64,000 nt of DNA from Oopsacas minuta (lineage: Eukaryota; Animalia; Porifera): assembly GCA_024704765.1 (NCBI GenBank), contig JAKMXF010000110.1, forward strand, positions 124,001-188,000, read 5' to 3'. Numbering within the stretch: the first letter of the stretch is position 1; each line of letters starts with the position of its first letter. A model generated the notes under the pieces. It was given only the letters and a program-made list of their open reading frames with translations. It made no database searches and had not been told where the DNA came from. This document shows, piece by piece, positions 46,452-52,466 of this stretch. The position numbers and the translations under genes are program-made.

Positions 46452-47409
46452 ACTTGACTAAGATACAGAAGAAGCCTATATGCCAAATGTGTTGTATTGT
46501 CTCATTGGTATATTGATATGAATAGAATTGAAGCCATCATCTATAAAGTGTCAATATCATTGTGACAAACTTGAGCTATTATATTATATTCAGACATCTG
46601 TATAATCTGGACCACCTCTATAATCCTACAATGTATCTGACCTGAAATATTCATTTCTGATCACAAATTCACTTGCTTAAGACAACAATTTGCTAATTAG
46701 ACAATATCCCAACGTATGTCAGCATATTAAAATGAATTAACTATATTAAAGTAGAAGATGTGTCAAATGACAGGATGTAAATTACTCAATTAAGGTAATT
46801 ACAGTATTAACTCTATTGATAATAGTTAAACTCAGACGTACCATTAAAATTATTAATTAGAATGACTCATTCATAAATACATTATAGTAACTCCAGTTGC
46901 TAAGTTGTAACTCATTATAATCAGTAATTTAGAATGACTCATTCACAATGCAATATTATCATTACTAGTCTATCTATATATACCCACATGAAAATGGGAA
47001 AATATTCAAAAGCTCCTCTTCTACATACACAGCATAAAACTACAACTAAACTGAACTCTTAATCAATTAGAAGTCCTCCTATTCCTACAAGCTAGCCAAC
47101 AGGTAACGATTATATATATTATATGAGCGCGCTTCGCTTGCTCGTGCTACGCGGTTGTGAACAATTCTTGTCCACACTCAGGCCTACGGCTCTCGGCTAC
47201 ATAAACTCATAATCTTAACCGTACCAAACATGATACTGCCATAATCTCAAATCTGCTGAATTTATGAGCCCTAAAGTGTACAAATATTTATGAAATGTTG
47301 TTTACAATATCAAATTTGGACTCAGCATACTCTCTTACCTCAGTATAACCATTGTGAGCATGCTTCTACCACTATATATCCATAAAAACATTACATATGA
47401 GAAACTTGA
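46452..47409 (+). repeat. ~960-bp segment duplicated at 55676-56657
   Basis: Near-identical from acttgactaagatacagaagaagcc to catatgagaaacttga, with small indels. Confidence 0.95.
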
Positions 47410-47886
47410 AATTCAGAAAATCGGATTCAGCGTACTTAGTTACTCCTGGTCTAGCCGACAGACTGGGAGTGCGGCTAACGAGTCTTGGCCAATACATTTT
47501 GAATATGTGTAAAAGGTGCGAAATTATGATTAATCGTTGATAAATCATGTAGTGATAAATATAAGATATTAAAATTGGAATCTCTATACTTGATTGGCCC
47601 TTCTAGCGGTTGAAACGAAATATCAAGCAGTATTTTGTGATAAATGCAAAAAGGTGTGAAAATATGATTAATCATCAAAAGGTGTGAACAATTCACTTAA
47701 AAAAATTCATACCCGAGGTGCAAATCTACTACCCAGAATGTATATATATATATATATACCAATTTTTATGTTAATCGGATTACTAGATTTCGTGACCATG
47801 CTGACGTCGAACATCGTCCAGGCCATTAGGGTACCTCCCTATAGGAGCAAAAAGGCGAGTCTCACAACTTATCTTACACATGTAAT

Positions 47887-48001
47887 CAGTGGCGACGCTA
47901 GCCAACTGCTACAGGTGGGTCACAAGTAATTAAAATGGGGCATACTAACATTAAGAGGTGGGGCACAGGCCCTACCTGGTCCCACCCTCGAGCCGCCTCC
48001 G
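47887..48001. mobile_element. Small hAT-like MITE just upstream of the GIMAP-Hint gene
   Basis: Imperfect TIRs cagtggcgacgctag / ctcgagccgcctccg (10/15) and an 8-bp flanking duplication catgtaat / aatgtaat (7/8). Confidence 0.55.
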
Positions 48002-48114
48002 AATGTAATGGGCATGCATAACAACCGACCTGTTGTCGTTGTTTATGTCAATCATGTGCATTCTCGGAAATACTAACTCTGACCACAGTACATTTATACT
48101 TATGAAATTTAGTA

Positions 48115-50790
48115 ATGGCTTCACAAAATCCAGAACAGGCACAAACTTTGAGCAAAAAGGAAAAAGAATTCTATGATAAATTCCAAGAATATTCAGGGTA
48201 TAAGAGATCGATATTCATGATCGGAATTACTGGAGCAGGGAAAAGTACATTCTGTAACTTTCTAGCAAATGATAAGTTATTTGATGAAGGATGTGGTTTC
48301 ATTTCTAAGACACAACAAGCAGGTGCTTGCAAATTTAGCTTCAATTCAGAAGATGTACTCATTATAGATTGTCCAGGATTTTGTGATTCTAAGCGTTCTC
48401 CTGAGGATATTCAAGATGAACTTTGCAGAGTGGGAGTGATGGCAAAGGACGGAACTGATGCTGTTGCCATTGTGGTCAATTCAATGGAGAGGTTCAGCGA
48501 TAATCATAGAAACGTGCTTAACCAGCTTGAATTTCTAGGCGGATCTTTGTGGGAACACGCATTCTTAGTTTTCACTAGAGAATCTAAATTAATAAAAGAA
48601 TTCGAAGTGGGAAGAGGCGAAGAGTATATTGAACTGATAAGTGCGGACAAAAATTGTCCACCAATCTTGTCAGAATGGTTGAAAAAGGCGAACAGACGTT
48701 ATGTTTGTGTTGAAAGCAAAAAGAAGTTTCAAAATGAAGCATACAGGGACGAAAAATGTAACAAGATCTTCGAACTAATGGATGATATTCGTATAACAAC
48801 AAACAATACGAGATACAACAATTCTATGATGAAACAAGGGGCTAGTTTCTTCAGACAAATTGCCGAAGCAAGAAGAAAAGAAGACGGAATGCAAAAATTA
48901 GCGATACAAATGGAGCATCAGAAGAATGAAGATAAGAAAATCATAGAAGAGGCACAAAGAAAACTAGAAGAAACACAAAAATCAGCAAATGAAAAAAATG
49001 AGAGAGACATGATGGTGATCGGACAAAAACAAAATGAAATTATGGAAATGAATAGAAAAATGGAGCATGAGAGGAAGGAAAATAAGAAAATCACAGAAGA
49101 TGCACAAAGAAAACTAGAAGATGCACAAAGAAAACTAGAAGAAACACAAAAAGCAGCAAATGAAAAACATGAGAGAGACATGATGATGAACGAACAAAAA
49201 CAAAATGAAATTATGGAAATGAATAGAAAAATGGAGATGAATAGGATAGAAAGTGAGATGCAGCAGTATAAATTACGAGTTGAAAAGCTAGAATGTGAGC
49301 GGTTACAAGAAATTGAAATTCGAAAATTGAAAGAGTCGTCCAGGGAAGCTGCTGAATCTGTATCTGGAAATGAGAGCAGTTCTTGTTTTTCTCATCAAAC
49401 AAAGATCATGCTTTCAACAGGAGAACTGAGCGATATTATCAATATTAAATCAGGTGATATAGTATTTACACCTAATGGTTCTAGGAAAGTTGCTGTCCTC
49501 TCAATGATCAAGAGATACAACGATAAAATCTACACCATTGATAACAGAGATTTCCAATTTAACAAGTTTCATCCTTTCGTCGCTTATCAAACAACAAACA
49601 CTGAACAGACATCTTTTGCTGTTATTGACGTCAATGAGTTCATTAACTTCATGCCTACCATGGCAGCAAGAAACATAAAGAGCCTATATGCAAGAGACAC
49701 TAAGTTATCTGGATATTCTAAGCAAGGTCTGTGTCCTATCCCAATTCAATCAATTTCAAAGAGTGAAGAAGATTTATCTTCCGAGTACGATATCCTTTAT
49801 GATGTCATTCTAGAACCAAACGGAACAGGAATTAACGAGTATTTTGCTGGAGATGTCAATCAGGTATTTCTCGTATCTTCCGAAATATCAATGTATACGC
49901 TAGAATCCGAACGTAAAATCATGCCGGCTCATATAACAATTCTTTCTATCATAAACAAAATATCACAACAACAAGCTGTGTATTCAAGTAAGATGCTCAA
50001 TACAGAGAATGACGTAATAAACTTCTTCGAAAACGAAATTATCCAAGATGATGGAATAAGTCTACTGACAGAGGCATCATTGAAAATGTCACATTTTCAA
50101 TCACTCAATCTCACAAGCATTCCTGTCACAATAAAAGAAATTGAAAAACATCTAAAGCAAACTCTAAGTTTCTTTGCAGAACCAAAACCTATAGCTGTAA
50201 CAACTTTGTCTCTGATTTATGAGGATTTTCAAACACTTATCGGTCCACTTCACACAATGATCAAGTTGGGATGGAGGGAATACACGCCTGCAGGGGAAAG
50301 AGAGCAATTGTCAGTAGGAATAGCAGATATTGCATTCATCAGCGAAGAATGTTTCTCTTTGCCAATTGAAATTATGTTAACTAAAAATACAGATGAAGTA
50401 CCGTACATGATGCAAGAAAGGGAGAATAACCAAAATGCAAGAATAAGACAAATAGTTGACACAATATATATCCCATTCGATGAAACACGTGATGACAAGC
50501 TATACTTGGTTGTGAAGGAGAAAAACACTCCAAATATTATCGCTAGGAAGTGCATCATACTTAATCCAAATAAAGTCTATGATTACAGATTGTTGAAATT
50601 ATTCTCATGTGATCATTTCAACATTTCGGAAGTAAGAGTTAACCTGGACATCAGGACTGTGTCTAACAAGCAAATGAAGAGGGAAATAACAGCAAAACAG
50701 GAATGGAACGAAGATCTTGAATTAGATTTCGCAGAGAGATTCGCTTCAAAGATAGTTGACTGCTTGGTGCAGAAAGTGAAGGCTCTGTGA
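48115..50790 (+). CDS. AIG1/GIMAP-family GTPase + coiled coil + intein-like Hint domain + uncharacterised, possibly C2-like C-terminal region; 891 aa, single exon
   Basis: G1 GITGAGKST, G2 SKT, G3 DCPG, G4 VFTRE. Coiled coil ~aa 250-420. Hint: S|C424FSHQTKIMLSTGELSDIINIKSGDIV, block B NKFH486PF, block F LYD563VIL, EYFAG, ending FLVSS589E. Confidence 0.88.
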   Translation: MASQNPEQAQTLSKKEKEFYDKFQEYSGYKRSIFMIGITGAGKSTFCNFLANDKLFDEGCGFISKTQQAGACKFSFNSEDVLIIDCPGFCDSKRSPEDIQDELCRVGVMAKDGTDAVAIVVNSMERFSDNHRNVLNQLEFLGGSLWEHAFLVFTRESKLIKEFEVGRGEEYIELISADKNCPPILSEWLKKANRRYVCVESKKKFQNEAYRDEKCNKIFELMDDIRITTNNTRYNNSMMKQGASFFRQIAEARRKEDGMQKLAIQMEHQKNEDKKIIEEAQRKLEETQKSANEKNERDMMVIGQKQNEIMEMNRKMEHERKENKKITEDAQRKLEDAQRKLEETQKAANEKHERDMMMNEQKQNEIMEMNRKMEMNRIESEMQQYKLRVEKLECERLQEIEIRKLKESSREAAESVSGNESSSCFSHQTKIMLSTGELSDIINIKSGDIVFTPNGSRKVAVLSMIKRYNDKIYTIDNRDFQFNKFHPFVAYQTTNTEQTSFAVIDVNEFINFMPTMAARNIKSLYARDTKLSGYSKQGLCPIPIQSISKSEEDLSSEYDILYDVILEPNGTGINEYFAGDVNQVFLVSSEISMYTLESERKIMPAHITILSIINKISQQQAVYSSKMLNTENDVINFFENEIIQDDGISLLTEASLKMSHFQSLNLTSIPVTIKEIEKHLKQTLSFFAEPKPIAVTTLSLIYEDFQTLIGPLHTMIKLGWREYTPAGEREQLSVGIADIAFISEECFSLPIEIMLTKNTDEVPYMMQERENNQNARIRQIVDTIYIPFDETRDDKLYLVVKEKNTPNIIARKCIILNPNKVYDYRLLKLFSCDHFNISEVRVNLDIRTVSNKQMKREITAKQEWNEDLELDFAERFASKIVDCLVQKVKAL

Positions 50791-51500
50791 CAACATTAAT
50801 CATATAGGCCCTTAGTTATCGGTTATTAGTTCTAGCCCTGTTGTTCGTAGTAAGTTTATACGCATTGAGCAACTAATAGTATAGACATCATTAGTTCCCT
50901 AGTTTGTATGTAGGTTATTAGTTTAGGCTCTGTAAAGTGTGCTTTTGTTGACATTTCATTAAAGAATCTCTCAAAACATGATTATTTAGGAGTAAATCAT
51001 GGGTTAATTCAATATGTAGCGGGGTTTCATACAGGCTTTGGATTCACCCTAAGGAAAATCTTCCCCCCAGGTGTGTAAAACTGTAAATACGTGTATCAAT
51101 AAGAATCTTGGGTACAGCCAGAACTCAATACTAAATAATCATTCGATTCAGGAATCTTGATATTCTTCCCACCCAGAAAAAATTCTCTACACAACCTTGT
51201 GTAATACCTGCTCATGACTTTGGATGTAAAATATTGTATTTTCAGTACGCCAACATAAATCAAAGAGCAGGATAGTCCTAATACTACAAAATCGTACATT
51301 CATGGGAACTCAAATATGCTAAATTGTCAGCTCACATTTACGACCAAAAATTATTAAAAAGTCATAAAGCAAATAATGCAGAGAAATATGATTAATAGAA
51401 AAAGATTATTCATAAATAGATGAGTAATTTTAAATGTAGAAATAATAGAGACAATGTATATATAATTAAGGGCAAGATTCACTTGTATTATAAAGAAGGA

Positions 51501-52466
51501 ATGGGATGTGTATATGGAACGCAGATTGGAGCAGGATTGCCAGTTGGAACAAATTCAGAAACTCGACAAATTCAAAACATAAATAATGACTTTCTAAACC
51601 ACAAATATCGTAATCCCTCTAAGGATTATGACTTGAGTGATGATACAGATGATGGGTATAAGTATCTGAGAGGAGGTTATCCATACTATCCGCCTTATGG
51701 ATGTGAGACAATAGTAATTAAGGTTATAAAGAAGTACAGTGATGACGTCTGGTTAGGACAAAATGGCAATCGTGGTACATACTTAACCATGCCATCAAGT
51801 AAAGACACGATTCGACAGTTGAAAGTACTCATCCAACAAAAATTAGGAGTAAAACCAGAGAATCAGTGCTTAAGGTACCAAGGCATACTAGTAGAAGATA
51901 CAAACACTCTAGAAAGTTATAATATAACTGACTATTCGATTATTACAGTATTCGTTGGAACTCAAGGCAGTTCAATAGAACAAAACTTGATTGATTCTAT
52001 ATATTTGGATCCTTATTGGGATCGTGACTACACAAACTTAACAGGTGAGCATATTAAGCGTATGAGAGGAGGATATCCATACTATAGACCTTGTGGATGG
52101 AAGAGAATAGCTATTAAAGTGACAGGGAAGTATTCTGATGACAAATGGCTGGGACACACTGGTGCAGAAGGTGAATGGGCAGTATCATACCATGGAACGA
52201 AAAAAGGTGCGTTTGACAATATTTGTACCCAAGGGTATAAAGTAGGAACAAGAGCGGTATATGGTAGAGGTGTTTACTCATCTCCTGATATTAATGTGGC
52301 CAAAGGTTATGCAAAACAATTTCTAATTAATGGAGTTACATATTTGGGAATATTTCAGAACCGAGTAAACCCAAAAGGTGTGAATATAGTGAATGATGGA
52401 GAGTTCTGGGTATGTCCAGATCCAAATGATATCAGGCCGTATGGTTTATGTGTGAAAAGATGTTAG
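51501..52466 (+). CDS. UBL-ART copy 1: MGC N-terminus, partial ART-like segment, ubiquitin-like domain, NEURL4/PARP-like ART domain; ATG 51501
   Basis: UBL: IRQLKVLIQQKLGVKPENQCLRYQGILVEDTNTLESYNI. ART: RPCGWKRIAIKV, WAVSYHGT, GRGVYSSP, AKGYA, FQNRVNP, GEFWV, DIRPYGL. Confidence 0.85.
   Translation: MGCVYGTQIGAGLPVGTNSETRQIQNINNDFLNHKYRNPSKDYDLSDDTDDGYKYLRGGYPYYPPYGCETIVIKVIKKYSDDVWLGQNGNRGTYLTMPSSKDTIRQLKVLIQQKLGVKPENQCLRYQGILVEDTNTLESYNITDYSIITVFVGTQGSSIEQNLIDSIYLDPYWDRDYTNLTGEHIKRMRGGYPYYRPCGWKRIAIKVTGKYSDDKWLGHTGAEGEWAVSYHGTKKGAFDNICTQGYKVGTRAVYGRGVYSSPDINVAKGYAKQFLINGVTYLGIFQNRVNPKGVNIVNDGEFWVCPDPNDIRPYGLCVKRC

Follow-up and report, generated by a model that had tools for sequence, protein, structure and literature searches.

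What does an immune-type GTPase gain when an intein-like domain is joined to its C-terminal side? The question is raised by a gene of the glass sponge Oopsacas minuta, lying in a 64,000-nucleotide stretch of contig JAKMXF010000110.1 (below, the window), whose product combines an AIG1/GIMAP GTPase with a Hint domain. The most familiar Hint domains are those of inteins and of Hedgehog, and in the latter self-cleavage goes together with the attachment of cholesterol; Hints that lack the C-terminal Asn (Hedgehog/Hog) are limited to the acyl shift on the N-terminal side and to transfer. To our knowledge, the activation and localisation of GIMAPs are poorly understood. With a probability of about 0.6, we propose that the protein is a cytosolic precursor, in which the AIG1 GTPase and a coiled coil are tethered to an autoprocessing cassette of Hint, helical, C2-like and hairpin parts and would be released by N-terminal cleavage between Ser423 and Cys424.

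The open reading frame, window:48115-50790(+), is intact, encoding 891 amino acids from an ATG start with no internal stops. The expression data are contigs of one run (X4), apparently RNA. A contig of this run links 47100/47102 to 48111/48113, its upstream arm being 48 letters long; the joint, present in X4 only, skips 1010 nt with GT..AG ends (cut +2). In X4 the depth drops to 18, 12 and finally 0 beyond position 50927. In this one run, the coverage is transcript-like and the 5′ UTR is spliced, which suggests that the gene is probably transcribed, with the following features:

47055–47102, + strand: 3′ end of the non-coding first exon (5′ UTR), with an in-frame TAG at 47093–47095 and the boundary ...CAACAG/GTAACG, from the X4 contig.
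47103–48112, + strand: 5′ UTR intron, GT..AG, 1010 nt, from the X4 contig joint and the splice-site letters.
48115–50790, + strand: coding sequence of 891 aa in a single exon, stop codon at 50788–50790; X4 contigs span 48111–50942 without a joint.
50791–50942, + strand: 3′ UTR, at least to 50942, where X4 contig 32 ends.

No signal peptide or transmembrane helix was found in the 891-aa protein, and, judged by its sequence, the encoded precursor is cytosolic. Its first half (aa 1–423, 49.5 kDa) comprises the GTPase and a Glu/Lys-rich linker, and the cassette (aa 424–891) accounts for 53.8 kDa. The N-terminal half contains:

48208–48837, + strand: AIG1/GIMAP-type GTPase domain, aa 32–241 (PF04548, E 3.8e-24), with P-loop GITGAGKS and DCPG.
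48838–49365, + strand: Glu/Lys-rich linker, aa 242–417, read as a coiled coil from its composition (Glu 20%, Lys 13%, Pro 0).
48944–49258, + strand: 171-nt (57-aa) tandem duplication within the coiled coil (48944–49087 versus 49115–49258, 90% identical).

The PF04548 match scores 85.6 bits against a Pfam gathering cut-off of 27, and both the P-loop (G37-I-T-G-A-G-K-S44) and the DxxG motif (D85-C-P-G88) are intact. These motifs are invariant or nearly so among 10 paralogues. In the linker, Arg and Gln are abundant along with Glu and Lys; its length differs among paralogues, and the 57-aa insertion produced by the tandem duplication is present in this copy only, compared with all paralogues.

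Ten intact paralogues or orthologues retain the junction and the motifs. Between the two O. minuta copies, dN/dS is 0.20 for AIG1, 0.25 for the Hint domain, and 0.23 for the C2-like domain, that is, the copies are under purifying selection. The surroundings of the copies vary: the paralogue on C343 has a methyltransferase and a Tc1-like transposase as neighbours, and in a second sponge-like assembly three tandem copies lie next to exons of ribosomal protein L4 and a kinase.

The Hint part begins directly after the linker:

49381–49386, + strand: predicted scissile junction between Ser423 and Cys424 (Hint Cys1), from conservation in 72 relatives and alignment with the VMA1 intein.
49384–49884, + strand: Hint domain, aa 424–590, from fold, conservation and dN/dS; His486 at 49570–49572, Asp563 at 49801–49803, Glu590 at 49882–49884.

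Sequence profiles recognise this region in part. The Pfam Vint profile matches aa 423–487 only, i.e., positions 1–63 of 166 and thus blocks A and B, with 23.1–25.8 bits, just below the cut-off of 27; in the C343 paralogue these 63 positions score 28.4 bits. PF01079 (Hog-type Hint) gave no match in the Pfam search with E-values up to 1–10, while the true PF01079 genes of the same genome are found at E about 1e-30. When the protein was searched singly against PDB sequences, nothing useful was returned, and neither PADLOC nor NCBIfam has a family for the sponge protein. A family profile, on the other hand, matches the VMA1/PI-SceI intein with E 1.7e-11, and Cys424 falls on its Cys1.

The structural model, m3ab9eafb5430, was built by AlphaFold2 on an alignment of 72 sequences, about 20% identical to the query, and has pLDDT 89.8 and pTM 0.89. 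With 13 close sponge sequences only, pLDDT was 46, and below 35 in the Hint part, so that the distant relatives from an exhaustive HMMER search were needed. According to VIA-align, aa 424–590 of the model match the Tetrahymena BIL2 (6tmm) with Z 16.8 (rmsd 2.3, 139 residues aligned), the Clostridium thermocellum BIL (2lwy) with 15.3, Hedgehog (1at0) with 13.5, and the Tetrahymena Vint (8r2c) with 10.1; at least 20 inteins, BILs and Hedgehog match at Z 12–15, and Foldseek gives TM 0.73–0.76 (normalised by target) with probability 1.00. The modelled fold thus identifies aa 424–590 as a real Hint domain, as the preliminary description had anticipated from sequence motifs when it read the protein as an AIG1 GTPase and coiled coil with a Hint starting at Cys424. 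The PF04548 match and the model uphold this architecture, the coiled coil being read from composition.

The best structural match brings up the possibility that the Hint acts as BIL2 does. According to a published report (PMC8616854), BIL2 conjugates the ubiquitin-like domain on its N-terminal side to substrate lysines; by analogy, a lysine of another protein would attack the thioester, joining the GTPase and coiled coil to it by an isopeptide bond without ATP. We regard this as improbable, since BIL2 ends in an Asn (mutated in the crystallised N143A form), which the family of the sponge protein lacks, and what would be transferred is a 49.5-kDa GTPase rather than a ubiquitin-like tag. In addition, the adjacency to a UBL-ART array seen in the window is not kept at paralogous loci, and for this reason a functional link to that array, an idea based on the origin of BIL2 from a UBL/ART locus, is not supported.

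The catalytic residues can be followed through the family. The junction reads SSS/C424-F-S-H-Q, block B is N483-K-F-H486-P, block F contains Y562-D563, and the domain ends in F585-L-V-S-S-E590. In the 72-sequence alignment, position 1 is Cys in 71 sequences and Ser in one, preceded by Ser in 63 of 72; the block-B His is retained in 67/72 (Gln in the other five), the following Pro487 in all 72, and the block-F Asp in 71/72. Being kept across relatives only about 20% identical, these motifs are not conserved by chance, and together with the intein alignment they bear out the proposed assignments of Cys1, His486 and Asp563. The block-B Thr position holds Thr in 54 sequences, Ser in eight, Asn in five, and Ala in four; the Asn, pointed out earlier for this protein, is real and confined to the sponge clade. 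Given this Asn, and Gln for His in 5/72, rates may be low or conditional.

The same substitution, shared by all sponge copies, would suit a Hint that cleaves under strict conditions or not at all, so that the full-length, C2-anchored GTPase would be the working form and the Hint would act as a switch responding to redox state or to a ligand, or as a structural adaptor. The weak scores of the Pfam Hint-family profiles point the same way, and ligand- or metal-gated precedents exist, e.g., Zn and BIL2 (PMC8616854). Still, near-invariance of Cys1, His and Asp at about 20% identity, combined with dN/dS of 0.25, is hard to square with a scaffold, and we consider this explanation unlikely, if less so than conjugation to a lysine.

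The C-terminal edge of the domain is equally distinctive. The terminal His-Asn was described as replaced, and this applies to the whole family: positions 588–590, Ser-Ser-Glu in the sponge protein, follow the pattern [SA][SA]E, with no terminal Asn, Gln or Asp and no +1 Cys, Ser or Thr. Glu590 is present in 72/72 sequences and is the sole invariant polar residue of the family, the other invariant column being Pro487; the preliminary description had treated it only as a part of the Ser-Ser-Glu replacement. In the VIA-align ranges, the last residue of gp41-1, NpuDnaB and the BIL is paired with model residue 172 (Ser589), so that Glu590 would occupy the +1 position, a placement by alignment ranges only.

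Lacking both the C-terminal Asn and a +1 Cys/Ser/Thr, the domain is not expected to splice or to cleave at its C-terminus. Some distant matches do carry PT-HINT or Intein_splicing profiles, and the fold is that of inteins, so one might think of intein-like splicing or of release of the helical-C2 part as an effector, as in pre-toxin Hints. Yet positions 588–589 are Ser or Ala and position 590 is Glu in 72/72, and the C-terminal module is constant and the N-terminal domain variable, the reverse of polymorphic toxins, which makes this the least probable of the alternatives.

The conserved catalytic set and the missing terminal Asn make N-terminal autocleavage the likeliest chemistry on prediction. 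Cys424 would attack the carbonyl of Ser423 (N–S acyl shift) with the help of the block-B His486 and the block-F Asp563, and the resulting thioester would be resolved by water or an incoming nucleophile, freeing the GTPase and coiled coil from the cassette. Glu590, which would lie at the +1 nucleophile site of inteins beside the thioester, could serve as the general base for the resolving step, and the C2-like and helical domains may bring the reaction to a membrane or determine which nucleophile is used. That the protein cleaves, that Glu590 acts in this way and that any adduct forms is what we infer from these features, a lipid or protein adduct being purely conjectural.

The region downstream of the Hint consists of three parts:

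49903–50265, + strand: helical domain, aa 597–717 (model residues 180–300, pLDDT 76–93).
50305–50661, + strand: C2-like beta sandwich, aa 731–849, with near-invariant D845 and R847 (VIA-align, Foldseek).
50665–50787, + strand: C-terminal helical hairpin, aa 851–891 (model residues 434–446 and 449–473, pLDDT about 89–95).

Just downstream of the helical domain lies a near-invariant G719-W-R721, G719 and R721 being present in at least 90% of relatives. The C2-like beta pattern noticed at the C-terminus corresponds to aa 731–849 of the model, which match C2 domains, eight-stranded beta sandwiches, with Z 11.9 (1wfj; otoferlin C2A, 3l9b; 110–122 residues aligned) and Foldseek TM 0.64–0.73 normalised by target. 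Pfam C2 families gave no match here or elsewhere in the protein, and the ESM Atlas yielded no usable lead for aa 593–891 beyond one C2-like row.

This region raises the question of whether the cargo leaves the cassette modified. In a Hedgehog-like transfer, the helical and C2-like domains would present a membrane lipid, whose hydroxyl or amine (of a sterol or a phospholipid head group) would resolve the Ser423 thioester and leave the GTPase with a covalent lipid anchor; the precedent is Hedgehog itself, which combines a Hint with a sterol-recognition region. The presence of a C2-like fold, a classic phospholipid-binding module, after the Hint is consistent with such a transfer, as are the pTM of 0.89, compatible with the Hint and the C-terminal module packing as one unit, and the character of the top conserved non-Hint residues, which are charged (R721, D845, R847) and, together with the invariant Glu590, would fit a nucleophile that is polar or bears a phosphate. 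However, C2 folds also make protein–protein contacts, the sponge domain is outside the Pfam C2 profiles, and most family members are bacterial, without sterols; hence we hold this transfer to be a possible but doubtful outcome, ahead of the other alternatives. A broader version, equally tentative, is that the cassette represents a second, Hedgehog-independent adduct-transfer machine of bacterial ancestry, in which the C2 and helical domains would hold a membrane lipid as nucleophile, Glu590 would activate it, and the cargo would be freed with a covalent lipid anchor. The cargo would then be the immune GTPase in sponges and a common N-terminal domain of about 300 aa in bacteria, amphioxus and hemichordates.

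Returning to the release of the GTPase by N-terminal cleavage, its proposed machinery appears to be older than the fusion. Word-indexed protein searches returned the sponge clade only and, taken alone, would wrongly suggest a sponge-only module; the exhaustive HMMER search supplied the distant relatives. At least 164 protein clusters contain the Hint-helical-C2 cassette; most are from bacteria, of six phyla, and others from amphioxus and a hemichordate. The cassette is not an invention of sponges, being pre-existing, widespread and mostly bacterial. The preliminary description had not recognised the Hint and the following region of about 300 aa as such a cassette. The common N-terminal domain is found in 115 of 132 relatives, and AIG1 in the sponge clade only, which points to the N-terminal domain as the swappable part and the C-terminal module as the constant one. 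The common domain gave no Pfam or PDB match and no usable lead in the ESM Atlas.

Representative relatives are uncharacterised “Hint domain-containing” proteins of about 780 aa, e.g., WP_187803974 from Aquipseudomonas alcaligenes, WP_410994864 from Paenibacillus, XP_070567577 from Ptychodera flava, and KAI8505210 from Branchiostoma belcheri. They are true homologues of aa 418–891 (E down to 1.6e-31), with the S/CF start, TxxHP, YD and [SA][SA]E, but bear a Trp-rich N-terminal domain of about 300 aa instead of AIG1 and the coiled coil. Sponges, then, would have exchanged the usual N-terminal domain of a mostly bacterial cassette for the AIG1 GTPase. A quick tree recovers the sponge sequences as one clade with support of 100 and a long stem of 1.94; neither amphioxus nor Ptychodera groups with them, and the two do not group together. 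Such a tree names no donor or transfer direction for the sponge cassette.

At 16 of 25 bacterial loci, the cassette gene follows a gene for a protein of about 1300 aa without a Pfam domain, in which hydrophobic, transmembrane-like stretches are visible by eye. This partner had no match in the sponge genome (one query) and none in Pfam or PDB, and PADLOC and NCBIfam have no family for it or for the bacterial relatives.

Finally, we compared the sponge protein with known Hint systems. It shares with Hedgehog the Hint fold, Cys1, the block-B His, an Asp, the missing terminal Asn, a C-terminal extension, and an N-terminal cargo that is released (in the sponge, by prediction). It differs in the junction (S/CF versus G/CF), the lack of a PF01079 match, the cytosolic rather than secreted precursor, and the invariant Glu after the last strand; the Hedgehog extension is a short sterol-recognition region, whereas that of the sponge protein has about 300 aa and is helical and C2-like. 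BIL2 of Tetrahymena BUBL1 and the bacterial BILs are the best structural matches, with identity of only 16–22%, and BIL2, with its terminal Asn, lies between ubiquitin-like domains. The VWA-Vwaint-Vint proteins (PF14623), also cytosolic, align in blocks A and B (hhalign probability 94.7%, E 6e-8, 70 columns; BLASTP E 4e-7), but the likeness ends with these blocks and is structurally lower; their Hint is at the C-terminal end, after VWA and Vwaint, both absent from the sponge protein, and a canonical gene of this type is present in the same genome (G000:C11). What we see is a third, uncharacterised Hint cassette, with Hint, helical and C2-like parts and an invariant Glu, found in bacteria of six phyla and in three lineages of animals, which in glass sponges has captured an immune-type GTPase; if an adduct exists, it would imply new protein-lipidation or ligation chemistry.

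Fusion of AIG1 with a Hint, considered new in the preliminary description, has already been published for Acropora (C-terminal Hint, pfam01079; PMC3723955), Biomphalaria (C-terminal “hint/hedgehog”; PMC7053062), and amphioxus (“HINT,” no further type given; PMC12373286). The logic is the same, an immune-type AIG1 GTPase N-terminal to a Hint, but the sponge Hint is outside PF01079, has VMA/Vint-like blocks A–B, and is followed by the extra helical and C2 module, so the sponge protein looks like an independent fusion. AIG1 and Hog-type Hints have been joined independently in the same genome, which encodes a GTPase-MACPF-Hog-Hint open reading frame, and in other animals. This recurrence suggests that self-catalysed, irreversible release or re-anchoring of the GTPase has been selected in the GIMAP biology of invertebrates.

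In the ORF listing of the window, the AIG1-Hint gene is an uninterrupted reading frame of 891 aa at 48115..50790 (+). Four public sequencing runs, all from one sample, contain this stretch; three cover genes and spacers alike, and the coverage of the fourth, X4, behaves like that of RNA, with a depth of ~1-6 just upstream of 48111, ~35-230 over the ORF, and 0 past 51300. One X4 contig splices 47100/47102 to 48111/48113 with GT..AG ends, the splice-site letters in the window agree (donor CAG/GTAACG, acceptor TTTAG/TAATGG), and an in-frame TAG lies upstream of the coding exon at 47093-47095. The gene is modelled as a non-coding exon followed by a 5' UTR intron of 1010 nt and a single coding exon from the ATG at 48115; expression is probable from the contig-level evidence of this RNA-like run. 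The intron also contains repeated sequence (47130-47830), where the three gene-and-spacer runs show uneven, very high depth (up to ~20,000), with many joints and loose ends.

The O. minuta assembly (365 contigs, 61.46 Mb) carries two copies of the gene, and the closest named protein, hypothetical protein LOD99_12366 [Oopsacas minuta] (82% identity over aa 424-891), is encoded on its contig C343. A tandem duplication of 171 nt within the coiled coil (48944-49087 vs 49115-49258, 90% identical) accounts for the greater length of the window copy compared with its relatives. The gene that follows, at 51420-52466 (+) onward, has a ubiquitin-like domain (E 1e-12), then a weak PARP/ART-like match (E 0.008-0.02); this adjacency is not kept at the paralogous loci. 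Directly downstream of the paralogous AIG1-Hint gene on C343 lies a Tc1/mariner-type transposase ORF (HTH_Tnp_Tc3_2 + DDE_3; excerpted locus L002:8359-9438).

In Pfam, AIG1 matches aa 32-241 (E 3.8e-24, 85.6 bits, cut-off 27), and direct reading finds the P-loop (G37-S44) and DxxG (D85-G88) motifs, as well as the Hint motifs S423/C424-F, N483-K-F-H486-P, Y562-D563, and the ending L-V-S-S-E590. The Vint-type Hint profile gives a sub-threshold match (aa 423-487 vs profile positions 1-63 of 166; 25.8 bits for the excised domain and 23.1 bits for the whole protein, cut-off 27), and Hom_end_hint a weaker one. No hydrophobic stretch of transmembrane strength was found in the whole protein, the highest 20-residue Kyte-Doolittle mean being 1.33.

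An HMMER search, run exhaustively with a profile built on aa 418-891, yielded 164 cluster representatives with E<=1e-3, of which 83 had E<=1e-10. With close sponge sequences alone, AlphaFold2 reached pLDDT 46 and did not model the Hint part; with 72 of these representatives aligned, pLDDT was 89.8 and pTM 0.89, and the model comprises:

aa 424-590, beta-rich domain (Hint)
aa 597-717, helical domain
aa 731-849, beta sandwich (C2-like)
aa 851-891, helical hairpin

Compared by VIA-align with 48,161 PDB representatives, the Hint part resembles the Tetrahymena BUBL1 BIL2 domain (Z 16.8, rmsd 2.3, 139 aligned), the Clostridium thermocellum bacterial intein-like domain (Z 15.3), about twenty inteins (Z 12-15), the Hedgehog autoprocessing domain (Z 13.5), and the Tetrahymena Vint domain (Z 10.1), and the sandwich resembles the C2 domains of 1wfj, otoferlin C2A, E-Syt, Munc13, and cPLA2 (Z 11.9-10); Foldseek is concordant for both parts. 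Aligned through the family profile, C424 coincides with the first residue, Cys1, of the VMA1 intein of yeast (E 1.7e-11). Thus, the Hint domain and the C2-like C-terminal part proposed in the preliminary description are both borne out.

Residue conservation was counted in the 72-sequence alignment, whose rows from outside the sponges share 15-24% identity with the query. Position -1 of the Hint is Ser (63/72) or Cys (8/72), Cys1 is Cys in all rows except one with Ser (71/72 and 1/72), and position 2 is Phe in 68/72. In block B, the Thr position holds Thr in 54 of the 72 rows, Ser in eight, Asn in five, which are exactly the sponge rows, and Ala in four; the His is kept in 67/72 (Gln in 5/72), and the Pro after it in 72/72. 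The block F Asp is present in 71/72 rows (Glu in 1/72), the final two Hint positions are Ser or Ala, with Asn in 0/72, and the next residue, at the Glu590 position, is Glu in 72/72. Outside the Hint, G719, R721, D845, and R847 are near-invariant. Comparison of the two O. minuta copies gives Nei-Gojobori dN/dS values of 0.20 (AIG1), 0.23 (C2-like domain), 0.25 (Hint), 0.40 (helical part), and 0.49 (coiled coil). The structural alignments with gp41-1, NpuDnaB, and the BIL stop at Ser589 (model residue 172), opposite the last intein residue; judging from these alignment ranges, Glu590 would hence sit where the +1 nucleophile of the extein is found.

The Hint has Cys1 together with the His of block B and the Asp of block F, and lacks both a terminal Asn and a +1 Cys/Ser/Thr, so that neither splicing nor C-terminal cleavage by the intein route is expected. 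Hedgehog/Hog proteins undergo an N-S acyl shift, and a nucleophile then resolves the thioester. Since the chemistry that remains is of this kind, we take predicted N-terminal autocleavage to be the likeliest function (probability about 0.6): an N-S acyl shift at Ser423-Cys424 would be followed by resolution of the thioester, releasing the GTPase-coiled coil (49.5 kDa) from the cassette of Hint, helical, and C2-like domains (53.8 kDa), with Glu590 at the +1 site as the obvious candidate general base for activating water or another nucleophile. A non-cleaving scaffold could be suspected from the block-B Asn that sponges alone have in place of Thr, but exactly the catalytic residues are selectively conserved, and we assign this reading a low probability. 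The nucleophile of the predicted autocleavage may be water, a lipid, or a protein lysine. A membrane-linked reaction would be plausible in view of the C2-like fold and of the conserved Arg/Asp pair, and a lipid nucleophile is still rather unlikely in our estimate; a protein lysine, the nucleophile of BIL2 (PMC8616854), has a very slim chance. If true, adduct-transfer chemistry would sharply raise the interest of this gene.

Typical HMMER hits are 750-830 aa long and enter the Hint at around residue 290-350; some 35 of the hits match the C-terminal module to its end. Pfam detects Vint in 49 and Hom_end_hint in 43 of 59 full-length relatives, and AIG1 in the query only. On clustering of the N-terminal regions, 115/132 form one family of uncharacterised, Trp-rich ~300-aa domains, and only the 11 sponge sequences have an AIG1 N-terminus. 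Named bacterial members come from Aquipseudomonas, Paenibacillus, Endozoicomonas, Desulfolucanica, and Alkalihalobacillus; animal members lie on chromosome-scale scaffolds of Branchiostoma and Ptychodera flava. The eukaryotic assembly ENA ERZ20067936, presumably another glass sponge, has at least three copies in tandem. Given the shared C-terminal unit and differing N-terminal domains, the Hint-helical-C2 unit is an old, mobile cassette, in which the sponge lineage swapped the usual N-terminal domain for AIG1 and a coiled coil; an exchangeable N-terminal domain and a constant Hint-C module fit a "cargo-releasing" cassette. In the tree of relatives, the sponge sequences form a monophyletic clade, and both vertical descent and transfer would be compatible with its long and loosely placed branch.

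A prokaryote scan (one genome per species) gave 22 loci from Pseudomonadota, Cyanobacteriota, Myxococcota, Bacillota, Chloroflexota, and Actinomycetota. At 16/25 bacterial loci, the cassette gene immediately follows, in the same orientation, a gene for a ~1300-aa protein without Pfam domains and, by eye, with hydrophobic, transmembrane-like stretches; these partners are homologous to one another (E 8e-63). This two-gene unit (~1300-aa protein, then ~780-aa Hint-helical-C2 protein), conserved in bacteria of five phyla, had no PADLOC or NCBIfam match, and a search with one partner protein found no match in the sponge genome. The excerpted loci with the unit are:

L003:3979-10346
L005:4017-10358
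L007-L013, L015-L019, and L026

Searches of the O. minuta genome gave at least 35 matches of AIG1-like type and 14 to Hog-type Hints. A single ORF of 1234 aa on contig C33 (609511-613212, - strand; L029:2511-6212:-) encodes:

aa 83-255, AIG1-like GTPase (MMR_HSR1 28.9 bits; AIG1 23.8 bits, slightly below cut-off)
aa 544-722, MACPF/perforin domain (E 6e-14)
aa 1023-1227, C-terminal Hog-type Hint (E 3e-31)

Contigs C33, C88, and C133 carry more Hog-Hint ORFs, 1000-1150 aa long. On C45 (16430-19554; L030:1430-4554), the end of a 688-aa AIG1-like ORF is overlapped by an other-frame 381-aa ORF with a Hog-type Hint (E 1e-27), and the pair may be a single gene divided by a frameshift or short intron. 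Contig C11 carries a canonical VWA-Vwaint-Vint gene for 665 aa, with Vint at E 6e-43 (562897-564891, - strand; L001:4897-6891:-); the 2008 paper defining Vint describes the family as apparently absent from Metazoa.

The folds named in the preliminary description stand, but its assertion that no GIMAP-Hint fusion had been described is wrong: AIG1 with a C-terminal Hint has been published for a coral, Acropora millepora (pfam01079 in four transcripts; PMC3723955), a snail, Biomphalaria glabrata (PMC7053062), and amphioxus (including CARD+AIG1+HINT, with fungi mentioned; PMC12373286), and O. minuta itself has the GTPase-MACPF-Hog ORF. What appears undescribed so far is the Hint type, the helical and C2-like extension with its invariant Glu, and the kinship to a bacterial two-gene system, for none of which a description was found in the literature searched. 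Unlike Hog-type Hints, the sponge Hint has no PF01079 match, and its resemblance to Vint is confined to blocks A and B; it scores below the Vint cut-off and differs in architecture. The sponge gene looks like an AIG1-Hint fusion of independent origin, and the cassette beneath it is a distinct one without characterised members.
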